A stretch of 64,000 bases of DNA from Perkinsela sp. CCAP 1560/9 (Eukaryota; Protista; Euglenozoa: Kinetoplastea), in contig CBFFSA010000003.1 of NCBI GenBank assembly GCA_965644495.1, positions 310,001 to 374,000 of the forward strand, in the 5' to 3' direction. The position numbers and the translations under genes are program-made. The notes beneath the pieces were generated by a model. The model saw nothing but the letters and a program-made list of their open reading frames with translations, searched no databases and had not been told where the DNA came from. Of the stretch, positions 9,421 to 62,779 are shown one piece after another (the first letter of the stretch is position 1; the number at the start of each line of letters is the position of its first letter).

Positions 9421-9446
9421 AAAGATACAGTTTCTGTACCTTGTTG
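9421..9446 (+). other. Spliced-leader-exon-like motif AAAGATACAGTTTCTGTACCTTGTTG
   Basis: Resembles the conserved kinetoplastid SL 3' half CAGTTTCTGTACT(A/T)TATTG; not followed by an SL intron; TTTCTGTACCTTGTTG recurs at 31681-31696. Confidence 0.55.
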
Positions 9447-17555: not shown

Positions 17556-19336
17556 TAGTTTACAATTCCAATTTAGTATCTTAGTTGCAGACACTCTGAT
17601 GGCTACATTTCAAGAACTTCAGAGGAAGAGTAAGTATACCATATTTCTTCAAGAAATGGATATCCAGTACGCACACCGAATGGTCTCGATTTGTTAAGTA
17701 AATCGAAGTCCTGAGCAATTGTCTGTCCCGTAATCTCACTGTAGGAATAATCGACTTCTGCGCTAGGAGACTTCTTCCCCAAAGATACAGCAGCTTGACT
17801 CCTTCGCCGTACTTCGCCGTCAGTATCCAGATTCACCTTTCTATTCCGTTGTTGTCTCGTGGAGGACATGAAAACTAATAACTCAATTTACTGTAATATC
17901 TTATTGCATTACCAAATAAATATAGCAGACAAAGAAATACGATACCTGATCCGATTTCAAAGAAATTTACTCTGACTATAACAAAATTACGGCTACAGAC
18001 TACTTATATTGTACCCTACTTTTATAAGTTTTACTCTTTATACCACCTTTTTACTCTTTTTCGTTTATTCGGTACACGAGCACATACGGGACAAAAATAC
18101 GTAGGATAGATATACAGAACCAAAAAAAATATTACCGTAGAAAAAAAGCGCGACAAAATACAAAAAAAAAATGAAAAAAAATGAATATTTTTTTTTGGGT
18201 ACAATGTAAGTTCCCATTTTCCTAAAAAACATTTGGAATAGCTTTGTGGGAGATTTGAATCGAAGGCGTGTGACGATTCGGTCCGATCTACAGTCTAGAA
18301 TCATGAAGAAGCTATCAGGGCATGAAGAGAAGTTTCGTGTACCGTTGACTTACTGTGACCCCCCCTTTTAATATGCACACGTTTTTGGGGTTTGTGCATA
18401 TTAAGGGGGGGCATAAGAGGGGGGAGAACCCGTCCCCCTCCCGATAAAAATTGCGCTTTTATTTCCTGTGCGTTTTTCGGTGGAATTAACCCAATATTGC
18501 ACAATTTTTTTTCCTTCTTTTTTTTAACACTTTTCCAATTTTTACTTCTTCGCCGCCATCCATGAAAGAATCAAAGATTCGCATGGAGGATCAATTTCCT
18601 TCGTGAAGAGGGCATTGGATTGCGACGACTACGAGCGCATCCGTAAGAGCAAAGATTTGGGAAGTTTTTCGAACTTACGTGGAGGTGAGGCGCATACTGT
18701 ACACCCCTGTATTAGGGGGGGAAGCTTGATCACGAAAGCGATATCTGGCCAAACGTTTACATCGCACAGCGTATTGGGCAAGTTCTTCGAAATATTTTTT
18801 GTTTCCATGTTAAAGGGGGTGCTACATTTAGCAGAGATGATGGCCCGGGAGGGGGGCGGGGTTGTTCGTGTGTGCCAGCATTAAAAATGTTAAGAACGTG
18901 TACATATTAAATATTAAAATATTTACTGTGCAGTAGTATTTACTGTTGCGGATTACAGGAACTCCTTAATTCACATCGTACGGTACAGGCTTCTATCATC
19001 ACGTTATCCAAGGTTCCCAACTACAAAAAGTGGTACGGTAATACATTTTGCAGCCTGTGCAAAGAAAAATGATAGAGAGGAGTCGTGTAAATAGCAAAAA
19101 TATGATGCTTAATCCCTCACTTGGAAAATACTGAAATTTTGTCTGCGCTACCACCGTGGAAAAAAATCGCGTTTTTTGTGGGCAAAGACCCAGACAATGT
19201 GGAACGATTACAGGGGGGAAATTAAGTTATGTCAGCAAAAGTCGTGCTAATTTCTGGGATTAACACGATTTATGTTGACTCTTAGGCCGGATGATGGGAC
19301 TTAGCGATCCCAGCTTCCCGATCTAACTCACCCAGC

Positions 19337-20655
19337 GTACCTTGTTGAATTCAACAATATATTTAACTTCTCAGTCCCCCATGGCCCCTTCACCCCATCC
19401 AGCAAAGGAAGAATACCGCCTGGTGTGTCCGCTGCCCTCTTCGCCCCATTCCCCCCCATCACCACCTTGTTTAGCACCCCAGCGCCCTTCATCCCACAGC
19501 GCCGCCCCCTTCGCCGTCCCCCTCACCCCCTTTCGTCACCCCTTCATCCCCCCCTCCTCGCCCCCTTCGCCGGCCCGTATCGTCCCCCCCGATTTATCCC
19601 CTCTTCGCCGCCCCCTTCATTCGCTTCCGCTACACGTTTGCCCTTCTTTGCTGCCCTCTTCGCCGCCCCTCAATGCCGCGCTTCTCCCCACGCTCCCCGC
19701 CGCTGCCTCTCCCCCCCCTCCTGCTCTGACTTCGTCGCCCCCCCTTTCGCCCCCCCTCCCCGCTCACTGATCTGCGCATCCTACGCCGCCTCGCTCACCA
19801 CCAGCGCCGCCCTCCTGGCTCCCCTCCTGCGCAATCTTCTTCACCCCTTCGCCCCCTGCCTGGCCACCCTGTCCGCGCCCCCCTGCGCCCTGCACCGCCT
19901 TTGCATCCGGCGTCCTCTTCGTCCCCCTTCGCCGCCCCTTTCGCCGTCCCCCTTCGCCGCCCCACTCGCTGTCCCCCTACACCCCCTTCGCCGAAGAATG
20001 GCGCCGCCCGGTACCGAATATAACAAGGTACAAAAAAACTAGGGTGTGCGCCATTCATGCCAAACTTTGGAGTCGTTTTTTCTTCTTCCTTTGTGCGGCT
20101 TGCAACTAGCCCATGATAACGGGGCTACAGTGTTAATTCGGAAAGATACGAGCTCGTTGAAGCCGAGGTTTAGCCCTTTGAAGCTGAGGAGCCAGTCCGC
20201 TCAAGGGTATAACACCCTGGATGACTTGGTCCGTTGAAGCTGAGGAGTCTAAATCGTTGAAGCTGAGGAGTCTAAATCGTTGAAGCTGAGACTCGAGACT
20301 CTCGAACTATGCCAGCAAGCCGTTTTCGAGCTAATTTCTCCTTTGGGAGACGTGGGGCGTTCGGAATGAATCAGGGATAGCACCCGATTCGCCGAATAGC
20401 GAGGGCATAGCTCTCCACGTGCCCGGGGGAGGCGACACTAGGACCTGCGGAACACTCGTATGTAATCGTATGATTACAATGTGAAGTCCTAGCCCGAAAG
20501 GGTTAGGATTGTTCAGCGGCCAAGGTGGGTTAAAACCCACCTTTGAGTGGCGACCTTCCCCCAAGCTACCTCGGCTTACTCCGGGGAGGCAACACCCCTT
20601 TACGGGATAAAAAGCCTTATAAACCATCTATCATCTTGATTTACCATCTACCATG
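19337..20655 (+). mobile_element. Structured SINE-like retroposon (family A, copy 1)
   Basis: C-rich leader, conserved hairpin 19996-20056, GTTGAAGCTGAG repeats, multi-branch fold, 3' stem-loop and CATCTA-type tail; body closely similar to the minus-strand copy at 30655-33330. Confidence 0.7.
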
Positions 20656-21789
20656 TTCACTTTTTTCCCAAGCTTTGCCAATTCTTACTGTTCCTTAAAA
20701 AACACGCCCATTGAAGAAAAGTTTCATTTAGTCACTCATTTCACAAAGAAAATTGTAAACTTCAAATGCAGTAAAATATTTATTAGAGCACGGACCCATT
20801 TACAAAAGATTCCGAAAAATATATTATAATTTACAAAAGACAATTACCAATCAATCGAGTGACATTTTGTAGCGGAACTCGCGCTCTTTAGCCGCTCGGA
20901 CTATCAAAGGTGACCGTTTTAAGAGTGTTGCATTTCTAGAAATTTTCTTCAGGTTTTCAATTTCTGGGTGAGATATTTTCTTACTTTTTTTCGTCGCTTT
21001 CTTTATGTTCTGACGTGGGACTTCAATCGGAAGCATCACCAAACCATTGCTATCTAGTGAGATAAGTATTTTGATAAAAAGGAAACTGAGTGAAACGTAC
21101 CATGAACCCTCTCCCATTCGCGAGAAGCTTTGCTCGGACCCAAGCTTTTCGCCATTTGTGTGATCATGACCTTTTCCTCTAGGGAAGAAGGTTACTGCTT
21201 TGGGGTCTCTATGGAAATTAGGTCGCGCAAGACCTTCGCTTCAAGCGGGGTGAGCAAATATGCATCCATTTTTTAAAAAAAAGAACAAAATCTATTTTTT
21301 AACATACTTTCGTAACGCACTTTTGTTCCTCACAACCTTTTTCGCATTAACACGACTTTTGTTGACACAACTTTTGTTGCCTCGACTTTTGTTGCGATAA
21401 CGTTTTTTCCCTCCTGTATCTGGAAGAAATATTCTCCTCACACGACAGCGATAGCGCAATATTCATGGTCTTCACCAGCTCACAGAAACTTGCGAGAGAG
21501 AGAGAATACACTTTTTTAGCGAAAGCTATAGATTGCTTGGGGCAATCTGCAATTGTCTGCTTGTGGGATCAGGCGTGCGATGTGGGACTACGAACCTCGT
21601 CGAAAGCCTGTTATCGATGAATTAAAAAGAAAAGCAGGCACGGTAACTTTATCGAAACTTGAACAACAAGAAAAAGAGTTCAGCGAATTTGCTGTCGAAA
21701 GTTCTCTGGTGGAGAATACTATGCGTCCGGAGGGAGCAACTACAAATGCCTCGTGGAAATCGCTTTCTGGTGCTCCAAAATATAAAAAA

Positions 21790-28139: not shown

Positions 28140-28830
28140 ATGGTTATTGTGTTGTTGTTGGGTCCGGGCCGTTTGTCTCCGAGGAGATATGGTCTCCTCA
28201 CTTTCCGCGTAGGTAGCGGTGCGGGTGCTCCACGCGGGGAGTAAATATACAGCGCGAGAGCCTAGGCTCAGCCGCAGCGTGTAGACACCCGACTTGCTTC
28301 CTCCGGGAGAATGAGGTGTCATGCCCTAGTTGTTTAGTGTCTTGTTATCTTGACACCGGGCGACCCATGCAAAGCGCGTGGCGATGGGGTGTTGGCGAGG
28401 GCGGCGCACCGGGGCGAAAAGGGAGACCAAGAGGGGGGGCAAACCGGCGGTGCGGAGGTGGCGAGAAGGGCGGCGCAGGGGGGGAGGCGAGGGTGGTCAA
28501 GAGGGGGGTGAGGCGGCGGTGAGGAGTGGCGCAGGAGGGTCAAAGGGGGGCGAAGGCGGTGCTGGGAGTGGAGGGGACGGCAAAGGGTGTATCGATGAGG
28601 TGGGAGTGAAAAAGGGGGTGACGGGGAGCTGAAGGGGGCGGCGAGGAGGGCGGTGAGGAGGGTGGCGAGGAGGGCGGTGCGGAGGCCAGCGTGGAGGGCT
28701 GGCACTGGAGGCGGCGAGGTGGATGAAGCGAGGAGGGAGGGCGAAGAAGTCGACCAAGGAGGGCGGCAAAGAGGACAGTAACGTTGGAGGCGCAGGGTGG
28801 TGGAGGGGGGTCGCGACTACAGGAAATCGG
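28140..28830 (-). mobile_element. Structured SINE-like retroposon (family A, divergent copy 3)
   Basis: C-rich leader, hairpin GCCCG-GTGTC-AAGATAACAA-GACAC-TAAACAACTAGGGC, 3' ATCTCCTCGGAGA motif shared with about 61026-61038, (CAA)n tail. Confidence 0.6.
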
Positions 28831-31023
28831 GCGGCGAAATCGGACCCTTGGGGGGTCCAGGGGGGTCCAGGGGGGGTCCAGGGGGGGGGGTCCAGGGGGC
28901 ATACCGCACGAAATTTTTTTGAAAAAAATATTTTTCGAAATAAAAGCGCAGAAGGGGTAGACAGGGTCTTGGCGCGCATTTTCCACCCCCCTACCCGGGG
29001 GTGATCCCCCCTCGTATGCGCAGGACGGGTCCGTCAAATTCGGATTTTTTCGGATCTTTTTTTGAAAAAAATTTCCACTTGACGAAAAAAATGGTAAAAA
29101 AAAGTATTTTTACAAAATTGTTTCCCCTATTGTAATTTGATAGTTTGGGACCTATTCTAGCTTTCCACGCCATTGTTTTCGCGAGGTGTCGCTTCTTGAA
29201 GCCGTGGTACGCCTCCCAAAATCACCGATTTTTGACCAAAAAGTGCGAAAAAGTAATTTTCGGACCCAAAGGTGTCTTTTTGGGTCGGAAGAATGGTGTA
29301 GTTGGAGTCGCATTCTATACCCAATACCTTCTGCAGCCTCGAATGCATGTCTATGAGTGATTTCCCGCGCGTAAAAGTCGAATTTAGTGCTCTGAGAGCA
29401 AAAATACCCAAAAATCACCCTATTTTTACCTGAAAATCGGCTATTGGCTCAAATCCCTCCGTTTGCTTCAGCGTCCCTGGCCAATTTTCTTTTTTAGGCT
29501 CTTCGTTAAACGCGGTGGTAGTTTTCAACGCGAAGCGCGCAGCATGAGTGACTTCTAAGTTAAAGGAAATTAACACCCCGAAAGGGTTAATTAAACTCTA
29601 ACATACCGAAAGGGTTAATTCTTCGCCCGGACACGTAAAAGCATGCTGGTGCGTGCTCTTTGTTGTCGACGACGAAGCAACACAATCTTTCCCCTCACTG
29701 CGCGTAAATTTCAATGTTGCGTTTGATGAGGAAAACTTACCAAGAAATCAGATTGACATTGTCAAGAGTTTTGACCAGTTGGGGTATAGTAACCACGAAA
29801 ATAGTTAATATGTATTTATACATATAAATATATTTGTATGTATTCAAATAAATATTTATATGTATTCATGGCATTTCATGTTCTTTTACCCCTGAAAGCC
29901 CCGGAAAATAAACTCCCCCCACACTCGCTCACGTTTCCCCAGGCGCAATAGGGAAACTTGCCAATTGATCATAACATGTTGTGGGCAATACAAAAAGGAA
30001 TGCGGTGCGAAGCGGCGCGAATTTTTTTTACCCCTTAAGCAAAGTTATTATATCTAGGGACACTTATTATACCTAGGGACACTTATTATACCTCCTAGGT
30101 ATAATAACCAGGACGGTGGTTTATATATTTTATTATCTAGGACGTTAATCCACTATTTCCATAGTAAAAAGTTTTTCCCACCTGCCCACCTGGGGAGGCT
30201 GTAAAAGGTTTTCCCGTTCGTTAGTATGGTGGCAATAATAAAAATATTATTAGCATATGTTATAGTAATAAATTCAATGGTTGTTTCTCTGGGTACGTAC
30301 AGAAAAATATACATGACATGATTTATGATACTACCGTTCAAAATTACATATAGTTTGATTTAGTTTAACCTAGCGCGAAAGTTGTGATTCTACAGATTAA
30401 AACTCTAGGAATTGTAATTATCCCCTTTTTATCTACAATGAAAGTTATTCACGAACATTGTATTATTGAACGCAAACTTTATCTCGGGTATCGAAAGCTT
30501 ATTCTTCCTACGATATTTTATAATTCTCTTAAAAAATGTACCTTGTTGAATTATAAATTAATTCAATTTTATAATAAGAAATGGTGAAATCAAGAGCTCA
30601 AATCTCCGAGTTAAATCAAGAATCAAGCCTCGAACAAGATGAGGTCCTCGATGTTCCGATATATGATAGTTGTTGATAGTTGTAGGCCTTTTTATCCCGT
30701 AAAGGGGTGTTGCCTCCCCGGAGTAAGCCGAGGTAGCTTGGGGGGAGGTCGCCACTCAAAGGTGGGTTTTCGCCCACCTCGGCCGCTGAACAATCCTAAC
30801 CCTTTCGGGCAAGGACTTCGCATTGTAATCATACGATTACGTACGAGTGTTCCGCAGGTCCTAGTGTCGCCTCCCCCGGACACGTGGAGAGTTGTATGCC
30901 CTCGCTATTCGGCGAACTGGGTGCTATCCTTGGTTCATTCCGAACGCTCCACGTTCCCGAAGGAGAAATCGAACGGCTTGCTGGCATAGTTCGGGAGTCT
31001 CGAGTCTCAACTTCAATGGTTTA

Positions 31024-32461
31024 GAGGGCTGAAACCACCTGGGTTTGCCTGGGTTTGCTAATTTTCTATATTGTATTAGGCAACTCAGTTTCTTCCTTGA
31101 CGAAAAGCACAGTGTATTCTTTAATGCTTTTTTCGCACAATAAGTAACTTATTTTTCTTAGATTTTGTATTTATCCTGAACATACCACAATAGAATGCTA
31201 CACTATGATCTTCCGCCTGACGACGATGAGTTTGTCGTACATGAGTTTTCCTCTCCGGATTCCGAGAAATATGTCTCCCTCAGAAAATGGGTTTCGTTGC
31301 GAGAAACGTTTCGCATCCCTCTTGTCCGGACGGAAAGCACGATGCAATGGCTCCGCATGAGCAAGGCGGAAAGAGACGCCATGAAGTACGCTCCAGAGCG
31401 CTTGCCACCCCCAGAACTCATGTATCGCATGGAAGACAACATTGTCTCTCTATGCGTCAAGTGGGTGACAGACAGGCTTCGCCTGATTTGACGAAGAGCG
31501 AGATAAAGGACAGAGATTCTGAAATAAGAAATCAGAAAAGAATTGATCAGCAGGAACGAAGGAAACAAAGCAAACGACTTAATCGTCAAGCTCTTTCGGA
31601 ATTTAAGCTAGGTGAATGAAGCAGTCACATGTAGTAGTCATGTATGACTATGACATCTATACCTATGACATCTATATCTATTTCTGTACCTTGTTGTACT
31701 TTTTCCTTAGTTCATCCTTTCTTTCCCCGGCAACGGGCATACTCTTACTGTATTTTCATGCCCGTTGCCGGTCGGTACTAAGGCCGAAACTGTCCCTCTC
31801 TATTGTTGAAGCAGGGGACGCGCTTCCACCCCTTCATCCCTTCCCGACTCACTCCCCTGGAGTGAGTGTGCTTCCCTCTCTCGGCTTCCCCTTCTCTCGC
31901 AGTTACCTTTCCGAAGAGGCCATGCGTCACGGTGACCTCCCTTGAGGACCACTAGGCGTGTCCTCCGCCGACGAGACTCCCGGCTCTCCGCACCTGGAGG
32001 TCGCCCAGCTCTCTGCACCTCGGCTCTGTCGCAGCTCTCTGCACCCGGATTGCCCCCGAAACTGTGATATGGGGATTACGCATCCGGCTCCTGCACCTGC
32101 ACATGACAACCGAGCTCTCTGCACCTGGGACTCCAGCTCTCTGTACCCGCACACCTCCGGCGAGGGCGAACCCTCACTTGATCCACCCGTCGTATGCGGG
32201 CACGGACTTTGTGAGCATAATCTCTGCACTATAAGTGCATGAACGAACACTGAAAGTAATGATAATTTCGTACGATTTACATGGACCTCGAACTAGTCTC
32301 CCTGCACCCCCCACCTGGACCCGCCTTCCACCCCCGGGAACCCCCACCCGGATCCTCCAGCGAACTCCATAGCCGAAAAAACGCCAAGTACCTTTGCCAT
32401 TGGTTTCTCTTGGGACCTGACTGGGTTTGCCTGGGTTTGCATTTTACTGGTTTCAGCCCTC
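31024..32461. mobile_element. Non-autonomous PIF/Harbinger-type element
   Basis: TIR GAGGGCTGAAACCA / TGGTTTCAGCCCTC; TTA duplicated at 31021-31023 and 32462-32464; CTGGGTTTGC x2 near both ends. Confidence 0.75.
31670..32270. mobile_element. Short structured non-coding insertion (family B, copy 2)
   Basis: Starts with SL-like TTTCTGTACCTTGTTG; covarying hairpin shared with 9469-9512; array of GCTCTCTGCACC motifs; boundaries approximate. Confidence 0.5.
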
Positions 32462-32919
32462 TTAGACTCCTCAGCTTCAACGGACCAAGTCTTCTAGGGT
32501 GCTGTACCCGCGAGCGGACTTGGTTCTTCAGCTTCAAAGGGCTAACCCTCAGCTTCAACGAGCTCGTATCTCTCCGAATTCTGACCCTACTCCCGTTATC
32601 ATGGGCTAGTTGCAAGCCGCACCAAAGTAAAAAGAGAGATCGCTCCAAAGTTTAGCGTAAAAGACGCACACCCTAGTTTTTTTGTACCTTGTTATGTTCG
32701 GTACCGGGCGACGCCATTCTTCGAGATGCAGCGTGAGGGGGTGGGCGGCGTGTGGGTGAGGGCGGCGCTGGGAGGCAATGGGGGTGAAGGCGGCGAGGAG
32801 GGCGCTGAATAGGGTGGTAAAGAGGGCGGCGAGAATAGTAACGGTAGGGGCGGAGCGAGGAAGCGGGGAGCGGAGAGGAGAGCGGACAGGATCGCGGCGG
32901 GGAGTGTGGCAGGGAGCGC

Positions 32920-33150
32920 GGCGGGGAGCAGGGCGGGGGGAGCGGCGGGGGGAGCGGCGGGGAGTAGGGCGGGGAGTAGGGCGGGGAGTAGGGCGGGGAG
33001 CAGGGCGGGGAGCAGGGCGGGGAGCAGGGCGGGGAGCAGGGCGGGGAGCAGGGCGGGGAGCAGGGCGGGGAGCAGGGCGGGGAGCAGGGCGGGGAGCAGG
33101 GCGGGGAGCAGGGCGGGGAGCAGGGCGGGGAGCAGGGCGGGGAGCAGGGC
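32920..33150. repeat. 12-bp minisatellite (GGGCGGGGAGCA)n, about 19 units
   Basis: Directly visible tandem array. Confidence 0.95.
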
Positions 33151-33324
33151 GCGAGGGAGCAGGGTAGGAAGCACGGCGGCGCAGGAGGGGTGGAAGAGGG
33201 GAGGCAATTGGCGAGCAAGGGCGAGCATGGCGGCGCAGGAGGGGGGGTGCGAGGGGGCGGCGGTGGAACGAAATCCACGCTGAGGGGCATCATCGAAATA
33301 AAATAACATCGAAATAAATAAAAG

Positions 33325-33650
33325 ACAAGGTACACAGGCGGTGTAGCAGGCGTGGCGTGAGCGGCTCCATTTGCCGAACCGGTTCGCCCGCTCCTTGACC
33401 CTTCAGGGCTTTCGCGCAGAGCTTCAGAGGAGTCACGTTCATGTCCTGCATGGCTAGGAGGGCCTGAAGGCTTCGGCCGTATCCTAGCTTCGTCGATATA
33501 TAGCACGCCTTACGCAGCGAATACCTATCTTTTAAGAACGGACAGTGGGTGTGTCCTAAAGGAAACTGTCGTGCCCGGTTTGCTCTGGAAGAGACCTTGC
33601 TATCCAACAGGAGCAAGCTGACACCCCGAAACGATACTTCCCCTTTCATA
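33325..33650 (-). pseudogene. Fragment of VIPER-like tyrosine recombinase gene
   Basis: STKLGYGRSLQALL...PLKLCAKALKGQGAGEPVRQMEPLTPRLL is homologous to the YR ORFs at 40845, 48048 and 59885. Confidence 0.8.
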
Positions 33651-57908: not shown

Positions 57909-60712
57909 TTTACTGACGCATCTATGCAAGGGTGGGGTGCAGTCCTCAATCTTCCCACAGGAGAAGTTTACGCGACAGGAGCACCATGGATAAACCAAAT
58001 GGAAATAAATGCTGGTGAAGCCATTGCGGTGGAACGAGCATTAAATTTATTTCAACATCACTGGCAAAAGTTTAAAAACATCCACCTGCGCATCGACAAC
58101 ACAAGTGTTTTAGCCGCATTACGGAAAAAATGGAGCGACTCCGAAGGAATATCAAGTACATTGAAGCGCCTTATAGAATTTCAAGACCACAACAAGGTAA
58201 ACATAACGCAGTCATACGTGCGAAGCAGAGAGAACTTGGCTGATAGCTGGAGCAGAGAGTTCTACTAAAGTTATATTAGTTTGCATTTCATCTAAAATTG
58301 GTTTTTGATTAATTGTGAGCTGACTATATGATTAGTTTTAAGACATTACTCCATAGATCGGGGGCCGCCGAAATATGGGGAATAGAACGAAAGATGATAC
58401 TTGGGTGCGGATTTTCTTTAAAAAATAATAATATCGAAATTATTATACCTACCAGTATAGTTTTCTTTTCTTTGTCAACGTGCGAAAGGGATATATACTT
58501 GCGATTGGGCCGAAACTAACGAGGACGAATACGAGGATAAAGCCCAAGCTTGAGTATATAGTTAGTGAGAAACTTTCATTGTTTTTGACTATATCATAGA
58601 AGGGCCCATAAATATACCTTTACTAATATACATGAGCTTGTAAAATATGTAAGCACGATATAGTAGCGGGAGATAATCTTTACTATACTGCATAGGAATT
58701 ATTCTATACGATTACCGCCCCATGTATGCATTCCGAGAGAATTATGTAAACTTGTGTTAGTAATTATACTCGGAAAGTCAGGTAATCGTTCAGTTCAAAG
58801 ATATGATTTTATTGAACATTAGAAACCATTTCCATAAGTTAAAAGTTTTCCCACCCACCCACCCACCCAGGGCCGAAACTAACGAGGACGAATACGAGGA
58901 TAAAGCCCAAGCGTGAGTATATAGTTAGTGAGAAACTTTCATTGTTTTTGATTATATCATAGAAGGGCCCATAAATATACCTTTACTAATATACATGAGC
59001 TTATAAAATATGTAAGCACGATATAGTAGCGGGAGATAATCTTTACTATACTGCATAGGAATTATTCTATACGATTACCGCCCCATGTATGCATTCCGAG
59101 AGAATTATAAACGTACAAAAGGGAAGGGACAACCCTTTGTTCGTTTACAACAGACATTATAATGCTTTTTTATTATTAGCAAAATCGACATCGAACTGGC
59201 GTGCGGGATAAAAATTGTATAAGACTTGCGATCGGGTGGTCGCCGCCGAGGCTACCCGTTCGCTAGAGAATATGCAGTTCGATGGAAATATTGTTAATGG
59301 GGTACCCCTTTTTGATTTTAGCATAAGACGCATGTTTTTGCAGAAAAGTGATGATATACTCAGAAGAGATCATAGCAATTTTATCGTACACAAAACAAAC
59401 TTGAAGACATTTAGTTTATTTAGTTTTACGTATTTTAGAGAATATGATCGACGCAGCGAAATTCTTGAAGTCTACGGAAAGAATTTTTCTAGAAGATTAT
59501 ATAGGTTATTGAGATGATTTTATAGCATAGTGATTGTATTTCATATGTTCAAGTTGATATGTAGAATATTGGTTCATACGTTTTCATCTGTGCGTATAGA
59601 TTTTATTCTCGCTTTACGAACAAAAAAGAAAGCCCACCCACCATCCCCCATCCACTCGCCGCCGAGGCTACCCGTTCGCTAGAGAATATGCAGTTCGATG
59701 GAAATATTGTTAATGGGGTACCCCTTTTTGATTTTAGCATAAGACGCATGTTTTTGCAGAAAAGTGATGATATACTCAGAAGAGATCATAGCAATTTTAT
59801 CGTACACAAAACAAACTTGAAGACATTTAGTTTATTTAGTTTTACGTATTTTAGAGAATATGATCGACGAAGCGAAATTCTTTTGAGTCTGTTGATGGGG
59901 GTAAGCAGGATTACTCCCGAGGTACGCGTGGCATTGGACGCGATGTCCGGAATGTGGAGCTCGTCGACGTGGGAAACACGAGCAAGGTTGTGGGAAAGGT
60001 TCCTGGTATATTGCACCGGGAATCATATAAGACAGACACCCCTTCACGCAGTGACGTTCGTGCAACTTCTGCCAGTGTCAATACAAACCAAGGTGTCCTA
60101 CGGAAGGGCGCTAATGACCTTATTCAACCTGATCGGATTAAATACTGTCCCAATAAAATTCTTTTGCAAAGCTCTTCAGGGACAAGGAGCAGAGGAGCCA
60201 GTACATCAGATGCAGCCGTTGACACCATTCCTACTGAACAAGATACGAAGAAGGTGCACCCAATCCGAAAGTCAAACATTGCTAATGTGCTGGAAGGCAG
60301 CATCCCGTTGGTCCGAAACCGCCAATTTGACCAAGGACAAATTCGTGGAAATATCACCGCAAAAGATTGTAATTGCTTGGGGAAGGGGGACAAAGGCTAC
60401 AAGGTGCAACCCGTGGCGCGAATCGATGTACACAGTCATCCAGGGCCAGGGCACAATCGAATTGGCTCAATACGTACGTACGCTCAGGTCATGGGATCGA
60501 ATGTGCCGGACAAATGTGAGAGAGATGGACAGGAATATAAAGAGGGTGCTGGGAGAGGGTTTCGGCACACATTCCGCCAAGAGAGGGGCGGTAACGCAAT
60601 TATTCCAGGAAGTTGTCAAGGGGACAGTGGGAATCGAAGATGTGAAAAAATTAGCGAAGCACCAGCAAATCGAGTCCCTGTTGCGTTACAATTCAAACCC
60701 AGTTACCACCGC

Positions 60713-61068
60713 CAGTTACCACCGAGACATTGCAGCGTGAGAATGACACCGCCCGGTACCGGATATAACAAGGTACTAAGGAACTAGGGTGGGTGTCATT
60801 CAGCATAATCTTTGGAATGTGTTGTGTTTTTTCACTTCAAAAGAAGTGTTTTTTTAAGAAGAAGATAATAGAATAAAGAATATTTTCTTGTAGCATATAA
60901 AAGGAGTTAAAAAAGATAAGCTGGCTGCTCGCGCTCGATCTGGTCAAATCTTCGGATTTGACTTGCGTGCTGCGTGGCACAGCTCCTAGCAAGCGATAAG
61001 GGGGGGCTTGTCCTAGGGAGGTAACATCTCCTCGGAGATATATTGCCTAAAAATCATCAAATCATCAT
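60713..61068 (+). mobile_element. Short structured SINE-like insertion (family A, copy 4) in the YR/pol overlap
   Basis: 13-bp TSD CAGTTACCACCGC (60700-60712, 61069-61081); hairpin 60741-60801; 3' stem-loop; (ATC)n-like tail; removal restores YNSNPVTT|ALALGT. Confidence 0.9.
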
Positions 61069-62779
61069 CAGTTACCACCGCGCTAGCTCTAGGAACGGGG
61101 AAGGCGACAGCCAAACTGAGGACGCTTTAGCAATGAAGGAGTTATTTCGAGAATATTTGCGGGACATGCCGCAGGAAAAGCATCGATACACGATTGTACG
61201 TACCAGACGTACGACAAAATTGGCCACGGAGGAAGATTTAAAGCTACCACTGCACGTAAAGAAAATTCCTAAAATGGATGTCAATGAAATTGAGAACATG
61301 ATGAATGGAAGTACAAGAAACCAGTTTAGAGAAACGTTGAATACTTTGTTGGATCGGAGGAAGAAACCCGATAGTGAGCCAAAGGTAAATCCACGATTGA
61401 ACATGGAAGATATTAGTCATTTGCTAGACGCACGTATTGTTTCGCGTGTTTCCCCTGAGGAGGAGAACAAAAGACCATCCAATCAATGGGTGATACCGTT
61501 CACAGTAGTTGAGCCTGCGGACGATAAAGGGGAAACGGAGAGGCGGCGCTTCATAGCGTGGACGAAGGAGGATAATGAGCGAATTAAGAACGAGTACATG
61601 CCGCACGTCCCGTTAAAACACGCGGCTTATTATCTCCATCGAGCGCAGGAAGCTTTTGGTGTGAAGCGTGACCTGACATGTGGATTTTATCAAGTACCGA
61701 TTCCGGTAGCAAGTAGAACAAAATTTCGATTTCGCGCAGTAAACGGTGAGTTGTATGAACTTAATGTGATGCCAATGGGGCACCGGTGCGCCCCGGAACT
61801 GATGCACACCATTACATCCACAATCGCAGGAGATCCGGAGTATTGCAGAGCCGAGACGGCGTATACAGGACAGTTTAAGGTCGATGTATATGTGGATGGA
61901 TTGAGAGGTGCAGGTTCACTAGACCAAGTTCAGCAGTATACGGAATTTGTGGAAACTCGCGCGGAGAAAGTTAACGCCACGTTTAAGGATAAAGAAAAGG
62001 AGCCCATGAAGCAGTATGTTTTTAATGGCGTGGAATACAGCCATACCGAAGGTAAGGTAAGAATGGGACCGAGGAGCGTGAAAAAGATGCAAGGCGATAC
62101 TTTTCGGAATGCAACGTACGGAAAACTAGAATCAGCTGTGGGTAGATTAGTCCATGCATCAGCAGTACTGGGAGAACCCTTTGCCAATTACCACTTCACC
62201 TTAAAATTAGTGCGGCGCCGTATAAATGCGTTAAACAATGATCTGACATTATTGGATGTGAAGGTTCATCTTCCCCCCAATGTAACCATGGACTTGACGC
62301 GATGGAAGAAAAAGTTGATTTCAAACATATTCGTGGCGCCGCCGCCTCATCCCGACACTGTACCACATAACCACGTTTTGTATACGGACGCTTCGTCAAA
62401 AGGTTGGGGAGGAATAATATATTTGGACCACGGTTCCGTGATATGTGTGGGAGGTCGCTGGGAAGATGATTTCGATTATGAAGTCAATCGAGCGGAGACG
62501 AGGGCCGTTAGTCTCGCGTTCGAGAAATTGTCGCACCATTTTCAACGAGGTACCTGCGTAGACCTATTTATTGATAATACATCATGCTTAGCTTCCATAT
62601 GCAAAAAATCGACCAAATCGGATGGAATAAATATCGAATTGATAGGTGTACTTAAGTTTTTAAAGAGACAGGGTATAATAGTACAGCCGCATTACATTCC
62701 GTCAAAACTGAACCCTGCGGATCCAATAAGCCGAGGAGGATGGGATTGCGACAATGTGGCGAAAGGGGTGAAAGATTGA
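61069..62779 (+). CDS. RT + RNase H of element 4
   Basis: KRDLTCGFYQV, MPMGHRCAPE, YVDG, YTDASSKGWG, IDN, NPADPISR. Confidence 0.9.

Follow-up and report, generated by a model that had tools for sequence, protein, structure and literature searches.

A covarying hairpin shared by the 5′ heads of SINE-like retroposon families in Perkinsela sp. CCAP 1560/9

We analysed a 64,000-nucleotide stretch of DNA from the kinetoplastid Perkinsela sp. CCAP 1560/9 (GenBank assembly GCA_965644495.1, contig CBFFSA010000003.1, positions 310,001 to 374,000 of the forward strand; hereafter the window), in which a nested fold had been noticed in four elements resembling short interspersed nuclear elements (SINEs). 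The motif is a genuinely covarying, structurally conserved RNA hairpin that is so far undescribed, and many families of SINE-like retroposons carry it in their 5′ part, as a single unit or as two or three units in tandem. From the anatomy of these elements we think it probable, at about 0.6, that the hairpin is a modular head of a superfamily of SINE-like non-autonomous retroposons, acting in cis by binding protein and forming a ribonucleoprotein (RNP). The hairpin has no coding role, and there is no sign that it is self-cleaving. The preliminary description of this DNA had presented the motif as common to four otherwise different SINE-like elements; this held, the hairpin being their common head module. 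All genome-wide counts given below refer to the assembly that contains the window, which is eukaryotic and comprises 21 Mb in 110 contigs.

The hairpin unit is ∼60 nt long and is built from an outer stem, a CCC/GGG helix and a 5-bp inner stem. In copy 1 (positions 19990–20061 of the window, plus strand), the outer stem of 9–10 bp is followed by GCCC/GGGU and by the inner stem GUACC/GGUAC (5 bp); the apical loop has 11 nt and ends in AUAACAA, while the bulge on the 3′ side has 10 nt and ends in AACUA. Two unpaired segments, both purine-rich, are conserved among the copies: A(U/A)AAC(A/G)A in the apical loop and (U/A)AANAACUA in the 3′ bulge. The stems and loops that had been proposed by eye were reproduced by minimum free energy (MFE) folding and are visible in a MAFFT alignment.

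The alignment (A1) contained 14 diverse hairpin copies and was annotated with 14 outer pairs, GCCC/GGGU included, and five inner pairs, as first described. A covariance model (R1) was built from A1 and used to search the window with filters off. There were exactly four strong matches, scoring 51.7–90.2 bits, and the next best match scored 12 bits. All four copies were recovered in the places where they had been reported, at 19996–20056 (plus strand), 32661–32719 (minus), 60741–60801 (plus) and about 28310–28370 (minus). A genome search with this model, a check that the preliminary description had itself proposed, returned at least 150 matches. Pattern searches gave a similar picture: a 26-nt core pattern, for which shuffling predicted 0 matches, was found 88 times genome-wide versus 0 in the reversed control, and a looser core (CCCGG, 5-bp stem, loop ending in AACRAG, stem, 8 nt, TAGGG) was found 227 times versus 0. 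The inner stem exists in at least seven versions in the genome.

Covariation was assessed on 101 model matches from the loci examined, 45 of which were distinct. In the alignment of these 45 copies, which was fitted to R1 and is thus not independent of it, 91.3% of the cells were paired and both sides had changed in 14 of the 19 pairs. Pairing in the inner helix reached 98.7%, with alternations between U-A and C-G, between G-C and A-U and between C-G and U-A. None of 500 shuffles attained the observed pairing and covariation values, and when the 3′ partners were moved by 1–3 columns pairing fell to only 31–40%. In the independent MAFFT alignment of 14 copies, pairing was 93% and six pairs covaried. 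The compensatory changes and invariant loops had been taken at the outset to indicate a functional RNA, and the 14 covarying pairs bear out a conserved RNA structure.

We then compared the two strands. Over all pairs there were 58 G·U cells versus 24 A·C cells, the latter corresponding to G·U on the opposite strand; in the well-aligned core the counts were 26 versus 4. The pair 17–56 was A-U in 27 sequences, G·U in 15 and G-C in three, and was never A·C. By MFE, the sense strand folded more stably than the antisense strand in four of five copies, with copy 4 about equal. Copy 1 gave −29.6 kcal/mol (z −4.7) and −25.3 kcal/mol on the antisense strand, and copy 3 gave −29.0 versus −22.4 kcal/mol. 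Because both the G·U pairs and the folding energies favour the proposed strand, the selected fold is an RNA or single-strand structure of that strand.

The elements carrying the hairpin have the features of SINEs. They are dispersed, multicopy units of ∼230–650 nt that contain no consistent open reading frame (ORF), they are flanked by target-site duplications (12 nt at window copy 3; 16 nt at locus L054), and they have simple-repeat or A-rich 3′ ends. Families share the head and differ in their 3′ tails, which end in (A/TCA)n, (CAA)n, (TAAC)n (L048) or A10 (L009 and a tandem array on contig 33). Copies truncated at the 5′ end are also present (L016, L021, L025, L020 and L028); L021 and L025 start after the first hairpin (H1), and window copy 3 starts after the second (H2). 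Taken together, the target-site duplications, simple-repeat tails and 5′ truncations indicate that the elements move through RNA. At the loci checked, no consistent coding partner was found downstream of the hairpins, where there were unrelated reverse transcriptase (RT) or DDE genes, or nothing.

The organization is clearest in family B, whose boundaries were read from an alignment of nine loci. It is a discrete element of ∼590 nt, and the flanking sequences are unrelated beyond both ends. At its start the element has (G)TCAGGGC, then a hairpin of 8 bp that covaries, and next a short leader. There are then three tandem hairpins with the inner stems GCGUC/GACGC (H1), GUGCC/GGCAC (H2) and GUACC/GGUAC (H3). 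Downstream of H3 lies a AAUCUUUGGAG box, which is succeeded by a stem-loop of 6 bp, a U-run and a 3′ portion of ∼240 nt whose end is formed by a small stem-loop and A/TCA repeats. The head of family D likewise consists of three hairpins. Genome-wide, we counted 43 leaders and 36 family B tails. Two types of head can be distinguished: in one the leader (TCAGGGC plus the 8-bp hairpin) comes first, and in the other a C-rich tract is immediately followed by a hairpin.

In families A, B, D and some others, the sequence AAU(C/U)UUUGGA is found within ∼10 nt after the last hairpin, in the form AAACUUUGGA in family A. At loci L004 and L006, the box is the canonical Sm consensus AAUUUUUGGA. A stem-loop and a run of 6–13 uracils usually come after the box. 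The pattern of an Sm-class small nuclear RNA (snRNA), i.e. PuAU(4–6)GPu with flanking stem-loops and a 3′ U-run, was present at the sequence level in families B and D and partly in family A, the box being either AAUCUUUGGA or AAUUUUUGGA.

We propose that the hairpin, which folds on the sense strand of the element, acts in cis on the SINE RNA as a protein-binding, RNP-forming domain. In several families, it may work together with the Sm-site-like box, stem-loop and U-run that follow it, as an snRNA-like head. Such a head would stabilize the SINE RNA and mark it for copying by the machinery of a long interspersed nuclear element (LINE). The preliminary description had offered the motif as a candidate new ribozyme or RNP-binding motif. 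The second half of that suggestion is compatible with all that was seen and is the one we favour, while the ribozyme half is unsupported.

Several points weigh against our interpretation. The values of 91.3% and 14 of 19 pairs come from a model-fitted alignment, although the MAFFT set still gives 93% and six pairs. Copies of the same family are kin, so the cells of the alignment are not independent events. Families C and G have neither the Sm-like box nor the U-run, and the snRNA-like description is therefore not valid for all families. Finally, the hairpin could be derived from a LINE rather than being specific to SINEs.

SINE heads normally derive from small-RNA genes, snRNAs included, as in the snRNA-derived SINEU (PMC4494074). 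The Perkinsela elements are like these in being short and non-coding, in combining a shared 5′ head with family-specific simple-repeat 3′ tails, and in their target-site duplications, 5′-truncated copies and many dispersed copies. They differ in that the head is not a tRNA, 7SL, 5S or recognizable U snRNA sequence but one to three tandem hairpins that have no Rfam match, and in that the U-runs lie inside the element. The genes from which SINE heads are known to originate are those for tRNA, 7SL, 5S and U snRNA. Many SINE families whose tails differ keep the tandem hairpin of Perkinsela, which has no match in the databases, through compensatory evolution. The hairpin is thus a compact RNA element with which to ask how non-coding retroposon RNAs are made, stabilized and passed to reverse transcriptase, in a host with polycistronic transcription and universal trans-splicing, in which the coding retroelement starts observed begin with the host's own spliced leader (SL).

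The alternative that fares best, although we regard it as unlikely, is that the head is a relic of an Sm-class snRNA gene or of a gene like that of SL RNA, with the 5′ stem-loop possibly inverted. The head would then be kept mainly for the promoter and terminator signals that drive master copies, and the fold would be inherited from the parent gene. Apart from the usual origin of SINE heads, this is favoured by the resemblance of the hairpin, Sm-like box, stem-loop and U-run to the 3′ domain of an snRNA or SL RNA. A similarity to the SL on the opposite strand (described below) fits descent from an SL-like gene, and stand-alone SL fragments of ∼60 bp are reported from Perkinsela (PMC5601477). 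However, no parent gene was found, the array on contig 33 being made of SINE-type units with A-rich tails, and the Rfam snRNA and SL models gave no match to the heads. In addition, the element-internal U-runs would stop RNA polymerase III ahead of the tail, and neither tRNA-like genes nor tRNA-type boxes were detected near the hairpins.

The true SL RNA gene lies in L038/L039 (G000:C1:∼661300–661640) as two copies ∼297 bp apart, with a 5S rRNA gene close by (L038:2227–2345; 99 bits). This canonical kinetoplastid arrangement is consistent with a Perkinsela-like kinetoplastid host. The SL mini-exon is 38 nt long; it starts with AACTTTAACG and ends with CCTTGTTG (…CAGTTTCTGTACCTTGTTG), immediately before GTATGAG. 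Its 3′ half was found in ∼490 dispersed copies joined to non-intron sequence (e.g. window positions 9428–9446, L001, L003 and L036–L041), and these are retro-copies of trans-spliced RNA. Both coding retroelement starts that were observed are SL-headed and without hairpins. The SL-headed copies also include one SL-headed SINE. Among the hairpin-headed SINEs, no SL-headed version was found.

Hairpins of the H3 class match nt 20–37 of the SL in antisense orientation. With a gap of 2 nt, family D matches at 17 of 17 positions (z 6.8; equalled by 0 of 500 shuffles), and family A matches at 14 of 15. The matching region covers the GUACC…GGUA stem of the SL itself, and the loop on that stem, UUGUU, has its complement in the near-invariant AACAA of the hairpin loop. 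For H1 and family C the match is not significant, and for H2 it is marginal. Complementarity to the SL is not the feature that is conserved across all hairpins. The relationship between hairpin and SL is nevertheless probably real, and may reflect either descent from an SL-like sequence or a pairing function specific to one class. We regard this partial antisense match as the most interesting open lead, since it is a concrete pointer to a possible link with trans-splicing.

The reverse complement of the H3-class hairpin is like stem-loop I of the SL RNA in having SL nt 20–37 and the same GUACC…GGUA stem around the G/GUA junction. Unlike the 5′ domain of the SL RNA, it is the opposite strand that folds better and carries the G·U pairs, and the first half of the mini-exon and the intron are unmatched. 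We rejected the idea that the reverse complement of the hairpin is itself the SL RNA gene: the true gene is the one in L038/L039 with the 5S rRNA gene, and the hairpin shares only nt 20–37 with it, on the opposite strand. The array on contig 33 was likewise rejected as an SL array, being made of SINE-type units.

Three further connections with trans-splicing or its guide RNAs were considered and discarded. The head as an outron, with the U-rich tract and AG behind the last hairpin serving as a trans-splice acceptor to which the anti-SL sequence would recruit SL RNA, is not borne out by the copies, there being no SL-headed family A or B bodies within 30 nt. The sense hairpin was rejected as a miniature SL RNA donor (CUAGG/GUR): its purine changes together with the base that it pairs with, and a genome-wide pattern search, only ∼25% sensitive because one trailing base was fixed, gave no dispersed copies with hairpin sequence joined to other sequence after CUAG(G). 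An H/ACA pocket of the SLA1 type was judged by inspection against the textbook topology, in which two guide strands face each other across an internal pocket and an ACA/AGA box lies ∼14–16 nt from the target. It does not fit, since the two segments complementary to the SL are both on the 3′ side of the inner stem, and the internal loop has no nucleotides on its 5′ side.

It is improbable that the hairpin exists in order to pair with the SL, either on stem-loop I of the SL RNA in a loop–loop interaction or at the 5′ ends of mRNAs, SL-headed LINE mRNAs included. The SINE RNA would in this way be held close to the trans-splicing machinery or to that of LINEs. In a version confined to the H3 class, which we hold to be equally doubtful, the hairpin would be an anti-SL device through which SINE RNAs, never SL-headed themselves, dock by ∼17 nt of complementarity to SL nt 20–37 on the SL RNA or on the SL cap region of SL-headed LINE mRNAs and capture the LINE reverse transcriptase. 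The family D and family A matches, which take in both stem and loop of the SL, speak for a role in pairing, as do the SL mini-exon at the head of ∼490 dispersed copies and the two SL-headed coding retroelement starts. Against it stand the lack of a significant match for H1 and family C and the marginal one for H2. Moreover, the compensatory changes in the inner stem preserve the hairpin and destroy the SL complementarity, and the bulge position required for the 7-nt match differs among families. Because the SL is on every mRNA, the pairing would also not be specific.

In a related scenario, the head would be descended from an SL-associated Sm snRNA of kinetoplastids that has yet to be discovered. 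The nematode SmY RNA is an Sm-class snRNA that is linked to SL trans-splicing, and it is not known outside nematodes. At the sequence level, the Perkinsela head resembles SmY in the order of stem-loop, PuAU(4–6)GPu-like site and stem-loop and in the possible link to the SL.

A new self-cleaving ribozyme, or a processing site that sets the 5′ end of the element RNA, is very improbable. The invariant loops and covarying stems would be in keeping with a ribozyme, one family C copy with a clear target-site duplication begins 4 nt ahead of the CCC helix, and two truncated family B copies begin just 3′ of a hairpin. However, a cmscan of the whole window against Rfam 15 gave 0 matches at gathering score. 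No ribozyme family appeared at E-values up to 5 in the family A region (19700–20800) or up to 10 in the full family B element, the models without a match being those for hammerhead, HDV-like, twister, twister-sister, pistol, hatchet, hairpin and VS ribozymes. These results agree with the earlier impression, gained by eye, that the motif fits none of the hammerhead, hepatitis delta virus (HDV), twister and pistol consensus structures. The HDV-like fold is a nested double pseudoknot (P1, P1.1, P2, P3 and P4) that is cleaved at the 5′ end of P1. By inspection, the hairpin is purely nested; a stretch of the leader resembles P2-P3-L3 of the HDV-like fold, and no 5′ strand for P1 was found in hairpin or leader. 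Neither an HDV-like fold of leader or hairpin nor a hammerhead core was accepted, by inspection or by Rfam.

The 5′ ends of the elements also argue against cleavage. In families B and D, the start of full-length copies is constant, a TCAGGGC ∼60 nt before H1, and none of the three hairpins is missing from them. Truncation points are scattered, lying in the leader, the linkers, stem arms and one loop. Such a pattern has the look of reverse transcripts left incomplete, perhaps with pauses close to the hairpins, and not that of a single processing site. The statement that copy 4 begins just upstream of its hairpin, which had been seen as compatible with a self-cleavage or processing site or an RT stop, has to be amended: ∼450 nt of C-rich sequence precede copy 4. 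Its sister L054, with a 16-nt target-site duplication, does start 4 nt ahead of CCCGG.

A conserved 5′ module with ribozyme activity is known from other kinetoplastids. Pr77 is the 5′ hallmark of the trypanosomatid L1Tc/ingi, NARTc/RIME and SIDER elements (PMC3383444, PMC4035085). The Perkinsela hairpin is like Pr77 in being a conserved RNA/DNA module at the 5′ end of kinetoplastid retroposons, Pr77 being common to autonomous and non-autonomous ones. Pr77, however, is a single unit of 77 nt that adopts a double pseudoknot of the HDV type and whose self-cleavage takes place at its 5′ terminus, whereas the Perkinsela hairpin is simple, nested, repeated and internal to the element and has no match to HDV-like models. 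Here a deep-branching kinetoplastid has a 5′ module other than the Pr77 promoter and HDV-like ribozyme.

That the conservation stems from a short coding frame (PPGTxYNKV..N*) at the end of a proline-rich ORF, which the preliminary description had named as grounds for giving up the RNA reading, is refuted: two mechanical ORFs (32673–33506, minus strand, and 59954–60787, plus strand) do stop at a TAG inside the motif, but the frame is not conserved, the ORF at copy 3 is an insertion artefact in an interrupted host ORF that becomes one long frame when 356 nt are deleted, the ORF at copy 2 (32673–33506, 277 amino acids) is the translation of a C-rich 12-nt array, loop lengths vary by 1–2 nt among hairpin classes so that the TAG is in no constant frame, the paired substitutions alter codons while keeping the pairing, and the ORFs have no Pfam match.

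The four window copies belong to three families. Copy 1, a family A hairpin of the H3 class, scored 90.2 bits and heads a SINE-like element at 19990–20640 (plus strand), whose homology to copy 2 and other family A loci starts at the hairpin, as judged from repeat pairs and blast. The hairpin is followed by a AAACUUUGGAG box (20062–20072) and U-run, the body, and a tail ending in short CCATCT/ATCA-type repeats. Copy 2 (32654–32725, minus strand; 81.9 bits) is also of family A, with an outer stem that has partly decayed, and its element, delimited by the inverted-repeat pairs I1, I2, I4 and I5, spans 30680–32725 (minus). The body of family A is ∼650 nt. Copies 1 and 2 are alike in the head and the 3′ body, and in copy 2 these are separated by ∼1.5 kb of extra repeat-rich sequence.

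Copy 3 (60735–60806, plus strand; 89.2 bits) is an H3-class hairpin of family B. Alignment with nine family B copies placed it in a 5′-truncated SINE of 344 bp (60725–61068, plus) that lacks the leader, H1 and H2. The Sm-site-like box AAUCUUUGGAA follows at 60807–60817, as in families A, B, D and others, and a 6-bp stem-loop and then the U-run occupy 60833–60856, as seen in the sequence and the alignment. The element is bounded by the 12-nt target-site duplication CAGTTACCACCG (60713–60724 upstream; 61069–61080 downstream). Deletion of 356 nt fuses the ORF starting at 59688 in frame with the one ending at 62779. The duplication and the restored frame together show that copy 3 is a truncated SINE inserted in the ORF of another retroelement. 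Retroelements are abundant in the window, with RT and RNase H matches in several ORFs.

Copy 4 (28307–28376, minus strand; 51.7 bits) belongs to family C. Its inner stem is GUGUC/GACAC, its loop is 1 nt shorter, and it has two compensatory pairs relative to the H3 class. The SINE itself (28145–28376, minus) is ∼230 nt long, has AUCUCCUCGGAGA in its tail and ends in (CAA)n; its sisters are L054, with the 16-nt duplication, and L055. Families B and C have in common the tail motif AUCUCCUCGGAGA, which consists of a small stem and a loop of the UCGG type (28176–28188, minus strand; 61026–61038, plus strand). This motif is likely to be the recognition signal of the LINE that partners these two families. 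When the SINE tails were compared by blast with the RT-bearing loci examined, no LINE with the same tail was found.

Many heads of the hairpin-first type have a C-rich tract directly upstream, often with a 12-nt period and with a C fraction of 0.5–0.63. In the window, such tracts precede copy 1 (19360–19989, plus strand; C fraction 0.57 in the 200 nt upstream, with a sequence unlike the copy 2 tract), copy 2 (32726–33200, minus; an array of repeats spaced by 12 nt) and copy 4 (28377–28830, minus; C fraction 0.58), and others were found at L043–L045, L048, L050, L053, L055 and L056. The tracts lie only on the 5′ side, never the 3′ side, and differ among copies of one family. They look as if they were made at insertion or turn over rapidly, rather than being the target.

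Next to the tract of copy 1, at 19286–19360 (plus strand), there is a leader of the B/D type that is 5′-truncated and broken at the start of H1, after which the SL mini-exon contributes its final 11 nt and the sequence then becomes unrelated. A nested insertion of a truncated SL-headed element is the probable cause.

The pattern scan was also applied to metagenomes, where the 90 matches were either chance hits or an unrelated bacterial stretch without the A-rich bulge. This stretch, from soil metagenomes (L058, L069, L073 and ∼18 more loci), fits the loose core with a perfect 5-bp stem (…CCCGGCCGC…GAACGAGCGGC…) and looks like an unrelated bacterial element or gene.

Tandem repetition was seen at two further scales. 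In some leader-type SINEs, namely L012 (∼1260–1340), L029 and L057, two or three consecutive copies of the element's first 9–19 nt (TCAGGGCAT…) stand at the 5′ junction. On contig 33 (L031; G000:C33:73000–82999) and on contigs 31, 37, 41 and 48, SINE-type units are tandemly amplified with a period of ∼1.86 kb, each unit holding two or three hairpin variants. Copies of families A2 and B are also present in arrays of ∼2.5 kb on contigs 20 and 27 and of 6.1 kb on contig 64.

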